Positions 16,566 through 32,000 of a stretch of 32,000 nucleotides of DNA are shown one piece after another. A model generated the notes under the pieces. The model was not told the DNA's origin, did not search any database, and was given only the letters and a program-made list of their open reading frames with translations. This DNA is from Wallemia ichthyophaga EXF-994 (Eukaryota > Fungi > Basidiomycota). The stretch lies in contig NW_008806274.1 of NCBI RefSeq assembly GCF_000400465.1, forward strand, positions 56,925 to 88,924, read 5' to 3'. How positions within the stretch are numbered: position 1 is the first letter of the stretch; every line of letters begins with the position of its first letter. Both the position numbers and the translations under genes were made by a program.

Positions 16566-18189
16566 ATGTCACAAGAATCTGTCGCTGAGTGAGTTTAAAT
16601 GGTTTATTCAATAATCCCGTCTAACATAAATCCCAGTATCGGTCTGATGTATGTTGAGTGCATGTGCTGTGCTGATCACTTACTCACCCACTCACAGCGG
16701 CTTAGCCGTTATGGGCCAAAACCTAATCCTCAACATGGCTGATAAGGGCTATCAAGTCGCTGCTTACAATCGTACAACTTCCAAGGTTGACGATTTCTTA
16801 GCCAACGAGGCACACGGTGTGTCAAACACAGACACGAGAAGCCAGACTAACGGAATCACAGGTAAAGCAATCGTTGGTGCTCACTCTATTGAGGAATTCT
16901 GCAAGCAACTCAAGAGACCACGTAAGATTATTCTTCTCGTCAAGGCTGGTCCTGCTGTTGATTCTTTCATCGATCAACTCAAACCTTTCCTTGAAAAGGG
17001 CGATATCGTCATTGACGCTGGTAACTCTCACTACCCTGACTCTATTCGTCGCACTCAAGAACTCCAAAAGGAAGGCCTTCTCTTCGTTGGCTCTGGTGTC
17101 TCAGGTGGTGAAGAAGGCGCTCGTTGGGGTCCTTCCATCATGCCAGGTGGTAACCCAGACGCCTGGCCACACATCAAAGAAATCCTTCAAAAGACTTCTG
17201 CTCAAGTAAATGGTAATGAACCTTGTTGCGATTGGGTTGGTGATGAAGGTGCTGGTCACTACGTTAAAATGGTTCACAACGGTATCGAATACGGTGATAT
17301 GCAAGTCCTCGGTGAAGCTTATGATATCCTCCTTCGTGGTGTTGGTTTCTCTCACGATCAAGTTGCTGATGCTTTCAAGCAATGGAACTCTGGTGTTCTT
17401 GACTCCTTCTTGACTGACATCACTGCTCAAATTCTTGAACACAAGACTGACGGTGAAGCTACCGTTGATTCCATCCTCGATGCCGCTGGTCAAAAGGGTA
17501 CTGGTAAGTGGACCGGTGTCAATGCACTCGACCTCGGTACACCTGTTACCCTCATCGCTGAAGCTGTCTTTGCTCGTTGCGTCTCTTCATTGAAGGATGA
17601 GCGTCAAACTGCTGCTCAAAAACTCAAGGGACCTGCAAAGGAGCAATTCTCAGGTGACAAAGCTGCTTTCGTCAATGACCTCCAACAAGCTCTCTATGGT
17701 GCCAAGATTATCTCATACGCTCAAGGTTTCCTTCTCTTCCGTGAAGCTGCTAAGGAATACGGCTGGAAGCTCAACAACGCAGGTATCGCAAAGATGTGGC
17801 GTGGTGGATGTATCATCAAGTCAGTTTTCCTTGGTGACATCTCCAAGGCATACGAGCGTAACCCACAACTCGAGTCACTCTTATTCGATGATTTCTTCGT
17901 AAAGGCACTCGAAAACGCTCAAGCTGGATGGAGACGTGTGGTTGCACAAGCTACTCTCTGGGGTATCCCAACACCAGCACTCTCATCATCCCTCTCTTTC
18001 CTCGACTCTTACAGATCTGCTGACCTTCCATCCGCTTCCCTTATTCAAGCTCAACGTGATTTCTTCGGCGCTCACACTTTCCAAGTTAAGGACTCGGCCA
18101 AATCTGACAAATTCATCAAGGGTCAACCAAACCACTTGAACTGGACCGGTAGAGGTGGACGTGTTGCGTCATCTGCTTACGCTGCTTAA
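16566..18189 (+). CDS. GND1: 6-phosphogluconate dehydrogenase, decarboxylating; introns 16589-16636, 16649-16697 and 16817-16861
   Basis: Spliced product MSQESVADIGLIGLAVMGQNLILNM, plus GVSGGEEGAR, HYVKMVHNGIEYGDMQ, GQKGTGKWT, MWRGGCII and QAQRDFFGAHT. Strongly biased codon usage. Confidence 0.97.
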
Positions 18190-18393: not shown

Positions 18394-19743
18394 CTAGGCG
18401 GGTTGCTTAGCAGCACCAGCATCAACGCCAGCATCTGTTTTAACCGCAGCCTCCTCTTGATCCTCAAGGTACATCTGATCAATCAGTCGATCTATGTCTG
18501 GGATTGCAGAGTATCTCAAACCGACTTCACCAAAAACAGATATCTGTCGATGGTGATGATCGATAGACACTATATTTTGAAGGAATGAAGGCTGTGTGGC
18601 ACGGTTTAAATCGTAAACCTGACCATTTCCGAGATGTATTCTAACTTGACCATCTTCGTACACTAACAACTCCCCAATTTCACCCTCAGCGTCGTCATCT
18701 TGGCTGATTTGGTCGAGTTTTGAAAGGTCAGGTTTGGTGTCAGGTTTTTTGTCTTGATCTTTCTTTGTGTCCTTTTCTTTTTCTTTATCGTCTTCATCTT
18801 GATTTTTTTCTTGATCAGCCCCAGCAAATGACACCCGCTTGTCGGTGTTTGCTTGTTTGGGTGGTGCAGAAAACTTTGGAAAAGTCTTTGGGAATTGAAG
18901 GAAGAGCATTTTATCCTCATCAGCATCTAAAGCAGCTGTAAAGTCGTAAGCAACGTCCTCAGTCTCATCTTCTTCTTCTGAAGCACTAAGATCGAGACCA
19001 CCTTTGGCTATATCTTCAACATCAGCCTGCTCAACGTCATCATCTTCATCTTGTTTCATCTCATCAACGTTTCCATCTGGATCAGGTTTAACTTTCGGTT
19101 TAATGTCTTTGTTCAGATGCTTTTTCTTCTTATCTTTTTTATTATCAAACTTGTAATGCTCTTTAGGTATAGAAGTAGGAGCATTTTGATCGAGAGATGC
19201 AACTTGTTGAATATCGATAATTTCCATACCTTCATCCTCATTTTCAGAGTATTGCTCGGGGTCATCTTTAACAGTAGCACCTCTATCACCTGCTAAGCGT
19301 GAAGGTTTACCAGCGCCGGTGAGTTGAGCAGATTCTTTCTGCATAGCCTGCCTATTACCACCAACGGTGATACCTGAAGCTTGAGCAGAACGAGCTCTAC
19401 CCATTCCAGCGTTCTTTGAAGGACCCATAGCGAAAGGACCGGATGCAGTCATTTGAACTTCACCTCTACCACGACCTCTACCTCGTGTAGAATCGCCTCT
19501 TCCTCTACCCCTTCCTCTACCGCTAGAAGGATCCGAAGTGGGTTCTGGCTTGACTTCTGTGGGCTTCTTTCGTGGTTGAATTTTAGGCGCAAACTTCATT
19601 TTAGCGGTGCCTGCTTTAGTTTGTGAGGAGTATTCATTGGTGCGTGTGGAGGTGGATGGATTTGGATTTGAGGTGTGCAAAGTGCCGATGTTAGCTGGAT
19701 TTGGATTTGAATTTGAGTTTTCATTTGGATTTTCATTTGACAT
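18394..19743 (-). CDS. RPC53: RNA polymerase III subunit Rpc4/Rpc53, intronless
   Basis: MKFAPK and RG repeats in the N-terminal half, LFLQFPKTFP, and the C-terminal GEIGELLVYEDGQVRIHLGNG..DLNRATQPSFLQ domain. Confidence 0.85.
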   Translation of the reverse strand: MSNENPNENSNSNPNPANIGTLHTSNPNPSTSTRTNEYSSQTKAGTAKMKFAPKIQPRKKPTEVKPEPTSDPSSGRGRGRGRGDSTRGRGRGRGEVQMTASGPFAMGPSKNAGMGRARSAQASGITVGGNRQAMQKESAQLTGAGKPSRLAGDRGATVKDDPEQYSENEDEGMEIIDIQQVASLDQNAPTSIPKEHYKFDNKKDKKKKHLNKDIKPKVKPDPDGNVDEMKQDEDDDVEQADVEDIAKGGLDLSASEEEDETEDVAYDFTAALDADEDKMLFLQFPKTFPKFSAPPKQANTDKRVSFAGADQEKNQDEDDKEKEKDTKKDQDKKPDTKPDLSKLDQISQDDDAEGEIGELLVYEDGQVRIHLGNGQVYDLNRATQPSFLQNIVSIDHHHRQISVFGEVGLRYSAIPDIDRLIDQMYLEDQEEAAVKTDAGVDAGAAKQPA

Positions 19744-24305: not shown

Positions 24306-24631
24306 ATGAACACAATCAATAACCCAATGGAAGACAAAAATATGATTATGAAATATTTATGTGCAGGTGGGTTGATAGGGGATTTTGGAATTATTCTAAT
24401 ATTGTTTAGACTGCGCTAGTCCAAATGAAATAAAACCCAGGGAACCCATTAGGTGTAGAGAGTGTGGACATAGAATTATGTACAAGCAGCGTACAAAGAG
24501 GAGTGAGTTGGTTTGTTTGACTAATTTTTACAGAACCAGGCTTATAAACTAATAGTGGTGGGTTCTAGTAATTTTATAACACCCAACACAACAACTAAAT
24601 AAATCCACAGATCCAATTCGATGCTCGTTAA
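24306..24631 (+). CDS. RPB12: Shared RNA polymerase I/II/III subunit Rpb12 (RPABC4); introns 24367-24409, 24503-24555 and 24558-24610
   Basis: Spliced product ..[44 protein letters not shown], with the CxxC/CxxC zinc ribbon and the conserved C-terminus. This model needs a 2-nt exon. Confidence 0.92.
24556..24557 (+). other. 2-nt micro-exon (TG) of RPB12
   Basis: Context AACTAATAG|TG|GTGGGT: branch-like CTAAT and TAG acceptor before, GTGGGT donor after. Two 53-nt introns flank it. It supplies the TG of the Met codon in KRMIQFDAR. Confidence 0.8.
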
Positions 24632-25738
24632 TTCATTTAAATTGCCAAACCACGCACAGCAACTACCACCAATCCAAGTATCCTACCCAACTCAACTCAC
24701 AACCTTCTCAATCAACAAAGATAGATATATTTTGTATAATAATTCTCAATTATCTTATTATAATGATGCTAGATTGAGTATTGGCAGTGACTTGAATTTT
24801 GGCGTTGAAGGGATGGTTTTCAATGAAAATATTGAACACCTAGACAACCTATTACTGGCAATTGATCATTATAAATTAGATTGGTGGTCTTATAACGTTA
24901 TCACCTTCAGAGGCATCCTCACTAAGCTAACAACGGCTTTGTACAACTACGATGACAACTGGTGTCTCAATTGTATGCTCATCCACAATTCCATATTTAT
25001 CAGCGACAATTCACCACCAGCTAAACCATCCTCAGAATGGCACAAAAGGGCCATGTACAATGGCTACGCCTTCGAAGGTCTAGCCACTGGTGCACCTCAC
25101 ACTCCGACAAACAATTCGGCTCAATGGGCAACTATCAATAAACTACGCTTTGGTAAACACAAGATTCTAACTGCAGGGGAAGTTGATTGTGCGTCTACCG
25201 ATCAATTCCATCAACAACACCTCTACACTCCCCATCAAGATGACTACATTGAACTTAAGACATCCATTCAAATCCAATCCCCCGCCCAACAAGACCGATT
25301 CGATCAGAAGCTGCTCAAGTTTTACTTTCAGAGTTATCTATTAGGTGTCCCAGTTAGTTTGAGTAAGGGTGAAAATATTCACTAACAACCACTTAGAAAA
25401 TAGTTGTCGGATTCAAAAACAAAAGCGGTATTCTAGTCGATGTGAAGGAGTACGATACGCTATCACTCCCTAATCTCGTTCGCGGGAGTAACTACGCATG
25501 GAACCACAAAACCTGCACTAGTCTTGCCGAAATGCTGATTGAGTTTGTGCGCGAGACCATCACGTCTATTGGGGATGAAAGCAAGATGTACAAAGTGTTT
25601 TACAGCGCAGCTGATCGCACAATCTCAATCCAAGTCACTCATCTCGATGACATCTCTTACCCCACTCCCGACCCTTTCCCGCGGTATGGCTTCATGCCTG
25701 CTCATTTGCATGCACGTATGCGCGAATGTGTGCGCTAG
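24621..25738 (+). CDS. RAI1: Rai1/DXO decapping nuclease; one intron after about 25352
   Basis: YPTQLTTFS, TFRGILTKL, MYNGYAFE, ILTAGEVDC, YIELKTS, KLLKFYFQSYLLGVP/KIVVGF. Confidence 0.88.
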
Positions 25739-25837: not shown

Positions 25838-26779
25838 TCATTGACCTTGCACCTCTTTCACCCCCCACTCCCCATCAAATGACTTGATATCCCACTCAGA
25901 CACGCCAATACCACCGCCAAGCTCAATCCACTTATCCGACATCTTCTTTTTACGCTCATCGACGAAATCCATAAGCTGTGACCAGTATTTATCGTGATCG
26001 TAGACACTCAAATCGACATTCCCGCCAAAACTGTCCTCTAGCTGAGATTTATCTACCACATGCGAGACGTCATTCGAGAAGGACAGTTTCTCTCTGGTAA
26101 CGGGGTCGAGGAGGGGCGAGATAATTTTAAACATCCACGTGACGACGGCTGGAAGGTTAATAACGAAAGCAGTTCCCAGTGTTTCTGGGTAATGATCGGC
26201 TAGGGCATAAAGTACGCCTTTTGACGTGGCGAGCGACGGACCCTTAGCCTTCTTAGCGTAATTGATAAGCAGACTGACGGTTTCCACGCCTCTCGGAGCG
26301 CATATTTTAGCCAATTCGAGCATAAAGAAAGCATGATCAGTTTGCCGGGTGCTCTCCTCTGTGTTCTGTCTATCCGGCTTCATGTACCAGAGGGGGCGGG
26401 CCAAGTTATCGAATCCGCACAGGAGCTGCTTGCCCGTGAGCTGCTCGGGTGCTATATAGTCGCCGCTCATCAATTTGCCTCCCTCGTTGAGTCCTATAGT
26501 GCGACGCCAGATTAGGGTCTTTTGTAATCGCTCGATCGTCGTCACAGTGTTCCATCTCGTCGCTCGCAGATAGCGCAACATGCATTCTCTAGTTAAGAAT
26601 CGCTCTTCTACCCCGCTTATTCCCGCAGGAGTATTATCATTCTCGCTCATAGGGAGAGTGTTGAGTTGGCGCATCGCTGTTAGCACCAAATCATACTTTT
26701 CCTCTTGCTCACCCGTCAGCGCTGCTGGCTTTTGCGGCGGTTTTGCGCTGCTTGGTGGGTGTATTGGAAGATCGATCAT
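25838..26779 (-). CDS. Sec14/CRAL-TRIO lipid-transfer protein (Pdr16/Pdr17-like), intronless
   Basis: LTRECMLRYLRATRW, TLIWRR, GFDNLARPLWYMKP, HYPETLG, ISPLLDPVTREKL and QLEDSFGG. Confidence 0.88.
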   Translation of the reverse strand: MIDLPIHPPSSAKPPQKPAALTGEQEEKYDLVLTAMRQLNTLPMSENDNTPAGISGVEERFLTRECMLRYLRATRWNTVTTIERLQKTLIWRRTIGLNEGGKLMSGDYIAPEQLTGKQLLCGFDNLARPLWYMKPDRQNTEESTRQTDHAFFMLELAKICAPRGVETVSLLINYAKKAKGPSLATSKGVLYALADHYPETLGTAFVINLPAVVTWMFKIISPLLDPVTREKLSFSNDVSHVVDKSQLEDSFGGNVDLSVYDHDKYWSQLMDFVDERKKKMSDKWIELGGGIGVSEWDIKSFDGEWGVKEVQGQ

Positions 26780-26873
26780 GGCAGACGCGGTGAGAGGTGC
26801 GTGTACATATATATAAACATAAATATCATTACAATGCCATCAAATTGAAAAAAAATCAAGCAAATCAAATGAC

Positions 26874-28548
26874 TCACGCTTTCCCGGAATATTCCCCAGA
26901 AGCGTAATTATCATTAGACATTCCCCCGATGCTCCTCTTCCTGGCCTCGATAATCTCCCTATACACTCCATCATGCCCATGGGCGTCTTTCGAGTCATGT
27001 GAATGCTTGATGCGTTTCAACTCGCTAACGAAGCTCGTTCCCCAGAAGGAGCTAGTATATTTACTAACGTATTTGAAAAGTTTAGCGTGCTTCTCAGCGC
27101 GTTCCTCCGCCGACATGGTGACAGCTTCATGGATGGCGGTAGCCATTTCAGCGATATTCCAAGGATTGACGATACGTGCGCCATGGAAAGACTGTGCAGC
27201 GCCTGCGAATTCGCTAAGTATCATAACTCCATGATTAGCGCATTGCGTGGAAATATACTCATAGCTGACCAGATTCATCCCGTCGCGCGTGCTGCTCACG
27301 AGACATGCATCGCTAATCGCGTACAGCGCGCAAAGTTCATCGAAAGTGAGTGACTTGTGCATAAAGTGAATGGGCATGAACTCGACTGTACCGAACCGAC
27401 CGTTTATACGACCTACTAACTCGTTCACACGCGCACGAAGCGTCTGATACTCCTCAACTCCTCCCCGTGAAGGAATCGCGAGTTGCACTAGCACTACCTT
27501 GCCAATCCACTCGGGGTGCTGCTGGAGGAATACTTCCAAGGCGTGCAGCTTCTGTGGTACACCTTTTATATAGTCGAGTCGATCTACCCCGCAAATTATC
27601 TTCACACCCTCGAATCGCTTCCGAAGTGCTTCGATACGTCGCACCACCCCAGGCGTCTCAAGCATCTCGATAAACTGACTGGGCTCTATGCCAATAGGGA
27701 AAGTGCCACAGTGGACGAAACGAGCACCGAATTGAACACCGTTGGGTAGGGCACTAAGACCGAGGATGCGGGTGCATGAGCTGAGAAAGTGCCTTGCATA
27801 GTCATATGTATGGAAACCGACGAGATCGCAGTGAAGAATACCAAGGAGAATTTCCCTTCTGACAGGTAGAATTCTGTAGATTTCCGAGCTGGGAAAGGGA
27901 GTGTGGAGGAACCAGCCAATTTTGACACCGTGTTTCGGGTGAACGTTGTCTACAACGACGCCATCAATACCTCTATGCAAACGATCGAGTTCTTTATGCG
28001 TTTCATGACCAACGTTGTTCTTCTCGATCAAACCACGAAGCATCATAGGCAGGAGCATAAGGTGGTAGTCCTGGACCCAGACAAGGTCACCGGAGCGGAC
28101 CTGGCTAGTGACGACCTGAGCAAACATGGCATTGGCTGCGCGATAAGCAAACCAGTTGGTCTCGTCAAAGTTCATTTCACCTGGGTGGTAGTGGAAGAGT
28201 GGCCAAATCATTTCATTAGCGAATCCATTGTAGTACTTGTCAGCGATGTTGTCTGGGAGGAAGACAGGCTGGCACGAGTATTCATCGCGCAGTCGCTGTG
28301 TAACGTGGTCGTGGTCAGCTTCGGGGATTTCGATGCCCAGCCAGCCAATCCAGGTGAAATCCATCTGCTTCTTGCAGCCACTCAATGCGGAAACCAAGCC
28401 ACCGCTGGATAACTTGAATTCATCTGAGTTGTCGTGTGAGCGTGTGTGTGCTACACGTGGTTCACTCACACTCCCCGTCAAATCTACGAGATACAGTCAC
28501 AGGGAGCCTGTTGGAAACAACGATAAGCCTATTGGTAGACGTGGACAT
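26874..28548 (-). CDS. TPS1: Trehalose-6-phosphate synthase; intron 28424-28469
   Basis: Spliced product MSTSTNRLIVVSNRLPVTV..SSGGLVSAL, plus WIGW, WVQDYHLMLLP, GWFLHTPFPSSE, GVDRLDYIKG, RDGMNLVSYE and LSEFAGAAQ. Confidence 0.96.
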
Positions 28549-29892: not shown

Positions 29893-32000
29893 ATGACTGC
29901 AGAGGACACAGTCTACGTGAACTCTGAGCAGCAGCCGCTGCTCCATGAACATAGCAGCACCAGCACCTCTATCCGACGCAGCAAGAAATGCTACTGTAGC
30001 GTCTTGGGTGTGGTAGTTGCCGCATGTCTTTGGATCTGGCTACTCTTCTGGTTCCTGTCCGGCAATGCTCCACCCACTGGCATTCAACTTGGCCACATCA
30101 AGCCAAATGCCACTTACTACGACGAGAAGGGTGGCCGCACTATTCTCGTCGGTGATATCCACGGAATGCTTACTCCATTTGAGTGAGTTGGCGTGTTTCT
30201 ATTGGTTTTACCTTTTTTTTAACTTTTTTTTTTTTAGGAACCTCCTCTACGAATTAGACTACGATCAGGACAAAGACACGCTTATTGCGCTCGGTGATGT
30301 GATCGCCAAAGGTTCAAATTCCCAAGGAGTTTTAAACAAATTAGTTGAATTAGATGCACTCGCCGTGCGCGGCAATCACGACCAATTAGTCGTAGAATGG
30401 CGCGCTTTCCTCGACCAAGTGGAGAGTGTTAAAGGTGGTGAAGAATGGATCGCGATGGGATGCCCTAAGCGTCTCCGCCCAACTGGCGCGATGAAGCTTC
30501 CTAAGCACATGAAGACAAACACCCCTCACTTCCACATCGCACGTAACCTCACCCCGCACACCAAGGAGTTCCTCTACAACACCCCGCTCTACATCCACTT
30601 GCCTGACTACGACATGTACGCGGTGCACGCGGGTATGTTATCGGAGGACCCTACAAAGCCTCTCTCAACGTCCAACCCACCTTTCTTAAAGACAGGTCGC
30701 GGCGAGATTGACGTCTTCTCCATTCCCCAAAACAACCCAAAGAGTCTCGTTGAAATGCGCAGTATCGACTTGCACGGTAATCCTACACCAGACGACGATG
30801 CCGGGCCTGCATGGTACAACTACTGGAACTTCGACATGAGCGGTTGTCGCGAAGAGGACGGATGCACTCCTCAACGTGTTTCGTACGGTCACGCTGCCGG
30901 ACGCGGGCTCGACCTGAATGCATACACTTTCGGACTCGACACAAGATGCTATGGCGCGGGCAGACTCTCCGCACTCGTTCTCACTGCTGACAGAAAGGCG
31001 CAGACAGACTGTCACCGCAACCCACACCAATGCCACGGTGCATATGAAGACTACCAGGATGGTTATGAGGATGTGGACGTCTGTGGCGACTGCGAAGATT
31101 GCGATGAATACAGCTACAGCGGCGACTGCGACGATTGTGACGATTCGCTTGACTGCGACGACGACTACAACTACGACGACGACGATAACCTCGTAGCTAG
31201 CCGCCGCTGCTGCCACCACTGCTGCTGCTGCCACCACCGCCACTCGCACGGCCACTACAAGCACGGCAAACACGGAAAGAGTGGTAAGAAGGGCAAGAAG
31301 GGCAAGAAAGGCAAGCACGGTAAACACGGCAAGTCTGGCAAACACGGTAAACACGCTGACGATGGTGACGATGGTGACGATGGCCAAGATGGCGATGACG
31401 GTCAAGACGGCGACGATGGCCACCATGGCTTCCCAGGTCATCCAGGTCGTCCGGGACACGGCGGTCACAGTCACGACGGTTATCCAGGCTACCCAGGTCG
31501 TCCAGGCCACGGTGGTAACGGTGGTCACGGTGGACATGGCCACGATGGTGAAGATGGCGACGATGGCCGTGATGGCTACCCAGGTCGCCCAGGTCGTCCA
31601 GGCCACGGTGGTAACGGTGGTCACGGTGGACATGGCCACGATGGTGAAGATGGCGACGATGGCCGTGATGGCTACCCAGGTCGCCCAGGTCGTCCAGGCC
31701 ACGGTGGTAACGGTGGTCACGGTGGACATGGCCACGATGGTGAAGATGGCGACGATGGCCGTGATGGCTACCCAGGTCGCCCAGGTCGTCCAGGCCACGG
31801 TGGTAACGGTGGTCACGGTGGACATGGCCACGATGGTGAAGATGGCGACGATGGCCGTGATGGCTACCCAGGTCGCCCAGGTCGTCCAGGCCACGGTGGT
31901 AACGGTGGTCACGGTGGACATGGCCACGATGGTGAAGATGGCGACGATGGCCGTGATGGCTACCCAGGTCGCCCAGGTCGTCCAGGCCACGGTGGTAACG
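29893..32000 (+). CDS. Type II membrane metallophosphoesterase (Ppn2/ApaH-like) with a long Cys/His/Asp-rich and collagen-like repeat tail; intron 30183-30237; runs off the window end
   Basis: One TM segment, then motifs VGDIHG, LGDVIAKG, VRGNHD, VHAG, YGHAAGRGL and GLDTRC. The exon-2 frame (codons starting at 30239) has no stop up to 32000. Confidence 0.82.
31505..32000 (+). repeat. Perfect 96-bp coding tandem repeat, at least 5 full copies plus a partial one
   Basis: Units start at 31505, 31601, 31697, 31793, 31889 and 31985. Each encodes GHGGNGGHGGHGHDGEDGDDGRDGYPGRPGRP. Confidence 0.97.

Follow-up and report, generated by a model that had tools for sequence, protein, structure and literature searches.

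Evidence for a constitutive two-nucleotide exon in the RPB12 gene of Wallemia

How does the RPB12 gene of Wallemia ichthyophaga, which encodes the polymerase subunit Rpb12 (Rpc10, ABC10-alpha), keep its conserved C-terminus when its last two evident exons cannot be joined in frame? Here we analyse a 32,000-nt stretch of the genome of this halophilic basidiomycete (hereafter the window), in which this gene occupies positions 24306-24631 of the + strand. Exon 2 and the last coding exon are separated by a gap of 108 nt (24503-24610). A direct join of position 24502 to 24611 shifts the frame and leads into an unrelated tail of 55 codons that ends at TGA 24775-24777; a preliminary description of this DNA had stated the same, and reading the sequence confirms it. 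That description proposed that RPB12 requires an exon of two nucleotides, TG, in the middle of the gap, between two equal 53-nt introns. Every coordinate and string that it gave for the exon ends, the gap and the introns was verified, and the resulting model has four coding exons:

24306-24366, + strand: exon 1, from ATG to TGTGCAG, ending in phase 1
24367-24409, + strand: intron 1, 43 nt, GTGGGT...TTCTAAT (24395-24400)...TTTAG
24410-24502, + strand: exon 2, with the zinc ribbon CADC...CREC, ending AAG AGG A in phase 1
24503-24555, + strand: intron A, 53 nt, GTGAGT...CTTAT (24541-24545)...ACTAATAG
24556-24557, + strand: 2-nt exon TG, which completes a Met codon (A+TG)
24558-24610, + strand: intron B, 53 nt, GTGGGT...ACTAAA (24594-24599)...CCACAG
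24611-24631, + strand: last coding exon, 21 nt, ATC CAA TTC GAT GCT CGT TAA (IQFDAR and stop)

The gap contains AACTAATAG/TG/GTGGGT at 24547-24563, with 53 nt on either side of TG, and a canonical AG acceptor and GT donor directly flank the two bases (TAG/TG/GTGGGT, 24553-24563). With TG included, the frame is kept and the C-terminus reads RTKR-M-IQFDAR, as in the predicted protein ...YKQRTKRMIQFDAR; the mRNA junction predicted on inclusion is AAGAGGATGATCCAATTC (AAGAGG-ATG-ATCCAA), and on skipping AAGAGGAATCCAATTC (AAGAGGA-ATCCAA). Both introns of the gap are complete, and their length, donor and branch-like motif are typical for this genome. Their 53 nt are compatible with published mean intron lengths of 61 bp for W. 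ichthyophaga and 55 bp for W. sebi/mellicola (PMC3849046). Verified introns in the window have the donors GTGAGT, GTTAGT, GTATGT and GTGGGT, the last of which, used by intron B, is also found in RPB12 intron 1 and in one TAF1 intron. Candidate branch sites, CTTAT for intron A and ACTAAA for intron B, are found 11-12 nt before the respective acceptors. A chance origin of the AG-TG-GT layout is unlikely: among 20,000 dinucleotide-preserving shuffles of the 108-nt gap, any AG-NN-GT appeared in 7.7%, and AG-TG-GTRNGT flanked by two halves of 40 nt or more in 0.05%. Three other assemblies of W. ichthyophaga (four in all) carry exactly the same sequence here, which makes a sequencing error unlikely. 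We conclude, with a probability of about 0.93, that the third exon of RPB12 is a constitutive 2-nt TG exon between two ordinary 53-nt GT-AG introns. This reading, and with it the proposal that RPB12 needs the TG exon, is supported by five independent lines of evidence: the protein and its tail, the layout of the W. mellicola orthologue, the enumeration of splice paths, an assembled transcript and selection.

The zinc ribbon of the predicted protein matches Pfam PF03604 (Zn_ribbon_RPAB4) with 64.7 bits against a cut-off of 24 over residues 17-48, and the protein of the micro-exon model can be aligned up to its final residue, with no gaps, to the solved Rpb12 chains of S. pombe (3h0g_L), human (28jc_L) and yeast (1i3q_L). 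It carries the family tail RTKRxVxF(E/D)AR at its fixed spacing after the ribbon: the tail is ..RTKRMVQFEAR in Schizosaccharomyces pombe (3h0g_L) and ..RTKRLVVFDAR in human, and the fungal consensus RTKRMVQFEAR aligns with RTKRMIQFDAR of W. ichthyophaga without gaps. The protein thus resembles Rpb12/RPABC4/Rpc10 of S. pombe, yeast and human in both ribbon and tail, and differs from known Rpb12 by species-level substitutions only (Ile for Val, Asp for Glu). The methionine is at the predicted position in 100 of the 120 listed homologues, 55 of which end exactly in YKKRTKRMVQFEAR. The other 20, all annotated fungal proteins, end at RTKR or run on as RTKRS..; tails of the latter kind correspond to a reading through A/GT into an intron, which shows that an intron in the Met codon is widespread and often mis-annotated. 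The exact W. ichthyophaga protein, whether in its micro-exon, SEL, intron-retained or skipped form, was absent from a collection of 15 billion proteins.

The RPB12 locus of W. mellicola (L004) was found via the neighbouring RasGAP gene. It has the same AG-TG-GT that the preliminary description had proposed to look for in orthologues, within diverged introns: ACT AAG AGA A/gtgagtcg..(49 nt)..catttag/TG/gtatgtca..(47 nt)..aatatag/GTA CAA TTT GAT GCA CGT TAA. Intron identity between the two species is 38-55% at this gap. The two species share the donors, a CTTAT that precedes the first acceptor by 11-12 nt, and, before the second acceptor, a TAAATAAAT/TTAATAAAT stretch. Intron divergence is such that MAFFT places the micro-exon a few columns out of register when the two genomic loci are aligned, and the introns were aligned separately.

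We enumerated every GT/GC-AG path with at most three introns, none shorter than 20 nt, that preserves RTKR and terminates at the RPB12 stop. Ten such in-frame paths exist in W. ichthyophaga and exactly one in W. mellicola, that with the 2-nt exon, which is also the only path common to both species with the consensus Met. One rival, missed in the preliminary description, is a single 100-nt intron with GTTTGT (24511) as its donor and its acceptor at 24610, which would do without a micro-exon and give the tail RTKRSELIQFDAR. Such an intron is possible in length, obeys GT-AG and stays in frame. However, the tail, which is gapless across fungi, animals and plants, would become two residues longer, the donor is unlike those of the verified introns in the window, and splicing would have to bypass a strong GTGAGT donor 8 nt before it. 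No equivalent of this path exists in W. mellicola, and the cDNA of a congener (see below) has the M. The junction predicted for it is GAGTTGATCCAATTC (GAGTTG-ATCCAA), and we give this single-intron path a very slight chance.

Transcript evidence for the TG exon comes from a 5134-nt Logan contig, SRR23314750_69842 (L013). Its exons are about 92% identical to those of W. mellicola, and nine W. mellicola introns of 45-50 nt are missing from it, which identifies it as a spliced transcript assembly of another Wallemia species. On its - strand, RPB12 reads ATGAAC...GTGTGCAG/ACTGTGG...CGTACTAAGAGA A TG GTACAATTTGATGCACGTTAA. Intron 1 is removed, and at the second site a net 96 nt (49 + 47) are gone while two bases are kept, so that the sequence across the TG exon is CTAAGAGAATGGTACAATTTGATGCACGTTAA (AAGAGAATGGTACAA; AAGAGA-ATG-GTACAA). 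L013 therefore documents the TG exon directly, at the cDNA level, in a congener, whose two introns we infer from W. mellicola. The preliminary description had called for RPB12 cDNA as a check: TG is retained in that of the congener, and our searches found no RPB12 cDNA of W. ichthyophaga itself, a look-up via an RPC4 variant (P0126) returning genomic contigs only. A literature search for the SRA run of L013 and for transcriptomes of Wallemia gave no hits. JGI metagenome contigs contained no spliced RPB12 junction of either Wallemia species.

Public annotations treat this locus differently. The reference annotation (GCA_000400465.1) has no gene between RAI1 and RasGAP, RPB12 being omitted, and population assemblies as well as W. 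mellicola carry a model of 413 or 417 aa in which the zinc ribbon of RPB12 is joined to RAI1, the next gene:

24621-25385, + strand: first ORF of the neighbouring RAI1/Dxo-like gene, with its ATG inside the last RPB12 exon
window 24306-25400, L006/L008 1006-2438 (population assemblies), L007 1006-2123 (reference) and L004 2531-3926 (W. mellicola): loci of RPB12/RAI1 models, with RPB12 fused or omitted

The fusion model uses the weak donor GTTGGT (24507), 4 nt downstream of that of intron A, together with the acceptor at 24610, and thereby shifts into the RAI1 frame. A real or alternative product of this kind would have the junction GGAGTGA-ATCCAATTCG / GGAGTGAATCCAATTC and a peptide across KRSE-SNSM. 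Its models, with both PF03604 and PF08652, are public; we could reconstruct the path, and the frame relation holds in both species. L013, moreover, runs unbroken from RPB12 into RAI1, and could represent overlapping or shared transcripts. However, this same contig has the TG form, with RPB12 ending at its own TAA, from which we take the fusion to be an artefact. Its donors are weak and not conserved (GTTGGT versus GTCGTC), it would lose the conserved Rpb12 tail, and the RPB12 loci that we inspected in other fungi showed no such fusion. Since gene finders prefer long ORFs, an artefact is also the simpler reading, and we leave the fusion only a slight chance of being real. As a consequence, the W. 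ichthyophaga reference proteome lacks an essential subunit common to Pol I, II and III, which other Wallemia annotations show fused to Rai1. Both errors are traced to a 2-nt exon hidden from gene finders and aligners, and they distort analyses of orthology, completeness and domain architecture.

The RAI1 ORF matches Pfam PF08652 with 204 bits from ORF residue 22 onwards, which makes a start further downstream unlikely. Its ATG (G ATG CTC GTT AA) is 8 nt before the RPB12 stop, at 24621-24631, and this overlap is conserved in W. mellicola (L004, - strand, ~3650); the corresponding site of L013 is at ~461 on the - strand. In spliced W. ichthyophaga mRNA, the A-TG-A junction gives rise to a TGA that is in frame with RAI1 and precedes its ATG by three codons. 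W. mellicola and L013 have TGG at that site, and there the RAI1 frame is open upstream through RPB12 exon 2.

Codon differences bear on whether the locus is functional at all. Between W. ichthyophaga and W. mellicola, 21 are synonymous and 5 non-synonymous over 47 codons; between W. mellicola and L013, 7 are synonymous and none is non-synonymous over 56 codons. In the last exon, the changes from W. ichthyophaga to W. mellicola are TTC/TTT and GCT/GCA, both silent in the RPB12 frame, plus Ile/Val. This preponderance of synonymous changes indicates strong purifying selection on RPB12. The lack of a gene at this locus in the reference annotation would also fit a frameshifted pseudogene or an assembly error, with a functional RPB12 elsewhere. 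Against this, the sequence is the same in four assemblies, W. mellicola has the same structure under strong purifying selection, the locus is transcribed and spliced in a congener, and no second Wallemia RPB12 is present among the 120 listed homologues. A defective locus is thus vanishingly unlikely.

Given short introns (mean 61 nt), each intron would probably be recognised across itself (intron definition) and not across the exon. U1 bound at the second donor (-3 to +6, GTG/GTGGGT) would overlap the first acceptor and cover its G. Such an overlap would make simultaneous assembly on both introns unlikely and stepwise removal likely; introns A and B would most likely be excised in succession, whichever goes first. 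Removal of intron A first would leave ATG/GTGGGT, and removal of intron B first TAG/TGATCC, both of which should be functional sites; the corresponding partly spliced forms are predicted to be AAGAGGATGGTGGGT and CTAATAGTGATCCAA, respectively. A stepwise removal of this kind would resemble recursive splicing with two bases left behind.

The branch point of intron A is more likely to be the conserved CTTAT (24541-24545), 11 nt upstream of the acceptor, than ACTAAT (24548-24553), which directly adjoins the AG and has no conserved counterpart in W. mellicola. Two decoy AGs, ending at 24533 and 24539 (CAG, 24537-24539), lie before the likely CTTAT branch point, and the productive TAG is the first AG downstream of it. 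The preliminary description had pointed to a second branch/acceptor-like site ending at 24533. The string TGACTAAT..TACAG is indeed present, but as a decoy acceptor: its 31-nt intron would be shorter than any verified intron of the window, and the reading runs into a stop codon. The acceptor at 24539 was rejected as well, its reading likewise running into a stop codon. Some splicing could be drawn to non-productive acceptors by these upstream AGs and by a good ACTAAT that lies at 24520-24525.

To place the two introns among fungi, we fitted annotated proteins back onto their genomic loci in a sample made up, besides Wallemia, of Piptocephalis, Tulasnella, Coprinopsis, Malassezia, Tilletia and Pneumocystis. 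The position of intron 1 is common to every fungus examined, and exon 1 ends in the same way (TGTGCAG/ or GCTG/) in W. mellicola, Coprinopsis, Tulasnella, Tilletia, Malassezia, Piptocephalis and Pneumocystis. Intron A (A/TG) is present in Piptocephalis (Zoopagomycota) and in the Agaricomycetes Tulasnella and Coprinopsis (loci L010, L014 and L016), in all three of which the last exon begins TGGT. or TGAT. The occurrence of intron A in both Zoopagomycota and Agaricomycetes indicates that its position is old. Intron B (ATG/) is present in Malassezia and Tilletia of the Ustilaginomycotina (loci L011 and L015), and is either ancestral to several basidiomycete subphyla and lost in some, or was gained repeatedly at an ATG/GT proto-splice site. 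Pneumocystis has neither. Among the taxa sampled, introns A and B occur together only in Wallemia, which is what creates the 2-nt exon.

Viewed across subphyla, the C-terminal intron of RPB12 looks as if it had slid by 2 nt, and Wallemia may represent an intermediate or the ancestral state. We consider it unlikely that the 2-nt exon is more than a quirk of this lineage; there are two ways in which it might be. It may be the surviving ancestral basidiomycete state, from which Agaricomycotina lost intron B and Ustilaginomycotina intron A, in which case the apparent 2-nt 'intron slide' would be differential loss around a micro-exon. Secondly, RPB12 and RAI1, which overlap and are spanned by one transcript contig, may share a single transcription unit, with splicing at the micro-exon determining whether free Rpb12 or a fusion of the zinc ribbon to Rai1 is made. 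With both positions occupied, Wallemia provides a test case for intron sliding versus differential intron loss.

The genes around RPB12 in the window are ordinary housekeeping genes. Two of them, 6PGD and RPC4, gave the following features:

16637-16648: 12-nt internal exon of the 6-phosphogluconate dehydrogenase gene (6PGD), TATCGGTCTGAT, between introns of 48 and 49 nt (gene part 16566-16730)
18394-19743, - strand: RPC4, 449 aa, with exact matches in W. ichthyophaga assemblies, among them the reference GCA_000400465.1, scaffold KE007224.1, which assigns the window to this species

The 12-nt exon restores the conserved ADIGLIGLAVMGQN motif of 6PGD and gives the N-terminus MSQESVADIGLIGLAVMGQN; the 493-aa reference model appears to miss it. 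Its presence in the same window indicates that micro-exons are not unusual here. The RasGAP gene of W. mellicola has a 47-nt intron directly after its ATG (L004 4064-4110), which is absent from the L013 transcript; W. ichthyophaga is without this intron, ATGGCCGCTGAG being contiguous at window position ~24201. Population assemblies (L006/L008 1-906) combine trehalose-phosphate synthase (Glyco_transf_20) and CRAL/TRIO in one 844-aa model, and the reference (L007 1-906) keeps the two apart (window ~25838-28481); the combined model is probably another annotation fusion in a compact genome. Positions 31001-32000 have 61% G+C, compared with about 45% elsewhere in the window, and a 434-aa ORF at 30686-31990 on the - strand has no Pfam match.

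How does the TG exon compare with known arrangements in which an acceptor and a donor nearly coincide? These comprise recursive splicing at 0-nt ratchet sites (AG/GT) and fungal stwintrons, and in both stepwise removal is expected. Wallemia differs in that two nucleotides are kept in the mRNA and each intron is complete, neither interrupting the signals of the other. We therefore rejected the stwintron class, as both introns have their own intact signals and TG stays in the mRNA, and likewise a recursive splice site with a 0-nt exon, as the 2 nt between AG and GT are retained, although the mechanism may be similar.

Our literature search found no paper on a 2-nt exon for RPB12 or for Wallemia. 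The preliminary description placed an exon of this size near the physical minimum; this does not hold, as one-nucleotide exons are described in Arabidopsis (PMC4674806), in CYP621A of Fusarium (PMC12940212) and in Coprinopsis (PMC12230235). The Arabidopsis and Fusarium exons are reported to be, as in Wallemia, constitutive, frame-keeping and overlooked by standard aligners and gene finders; they are of 1 nt instead of 2 nt, and belong to other genes and other lineages. The closest parallel in kind is Coprinopsis cinerea, a long-read annotation of which lists 13 one-nt exons, 57 two-nt exons (in 50 genes) and 27 three-nt exons (PMC12230235). Like Wallemia, it is a basidiomycete with short introns and internal 2-nt exons, the omission of which breaks both the frame and the gene model. 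However, RPB12 of Coprinopsis itself, unlike that of Wallemia, has intron A only and a last exon of 23 nt. Tiny exons are thus already known in related fungi, and the RPB12 TG exon is a well-supported new case of modest novelty. What sets it apart is its place in a universally conserved polymerase subunit and its presence in at least two Wallemia species. It also offers a clean, conserved case in which to study how splicing proceeds when just 2 nt separate an acceptor from the next donor.
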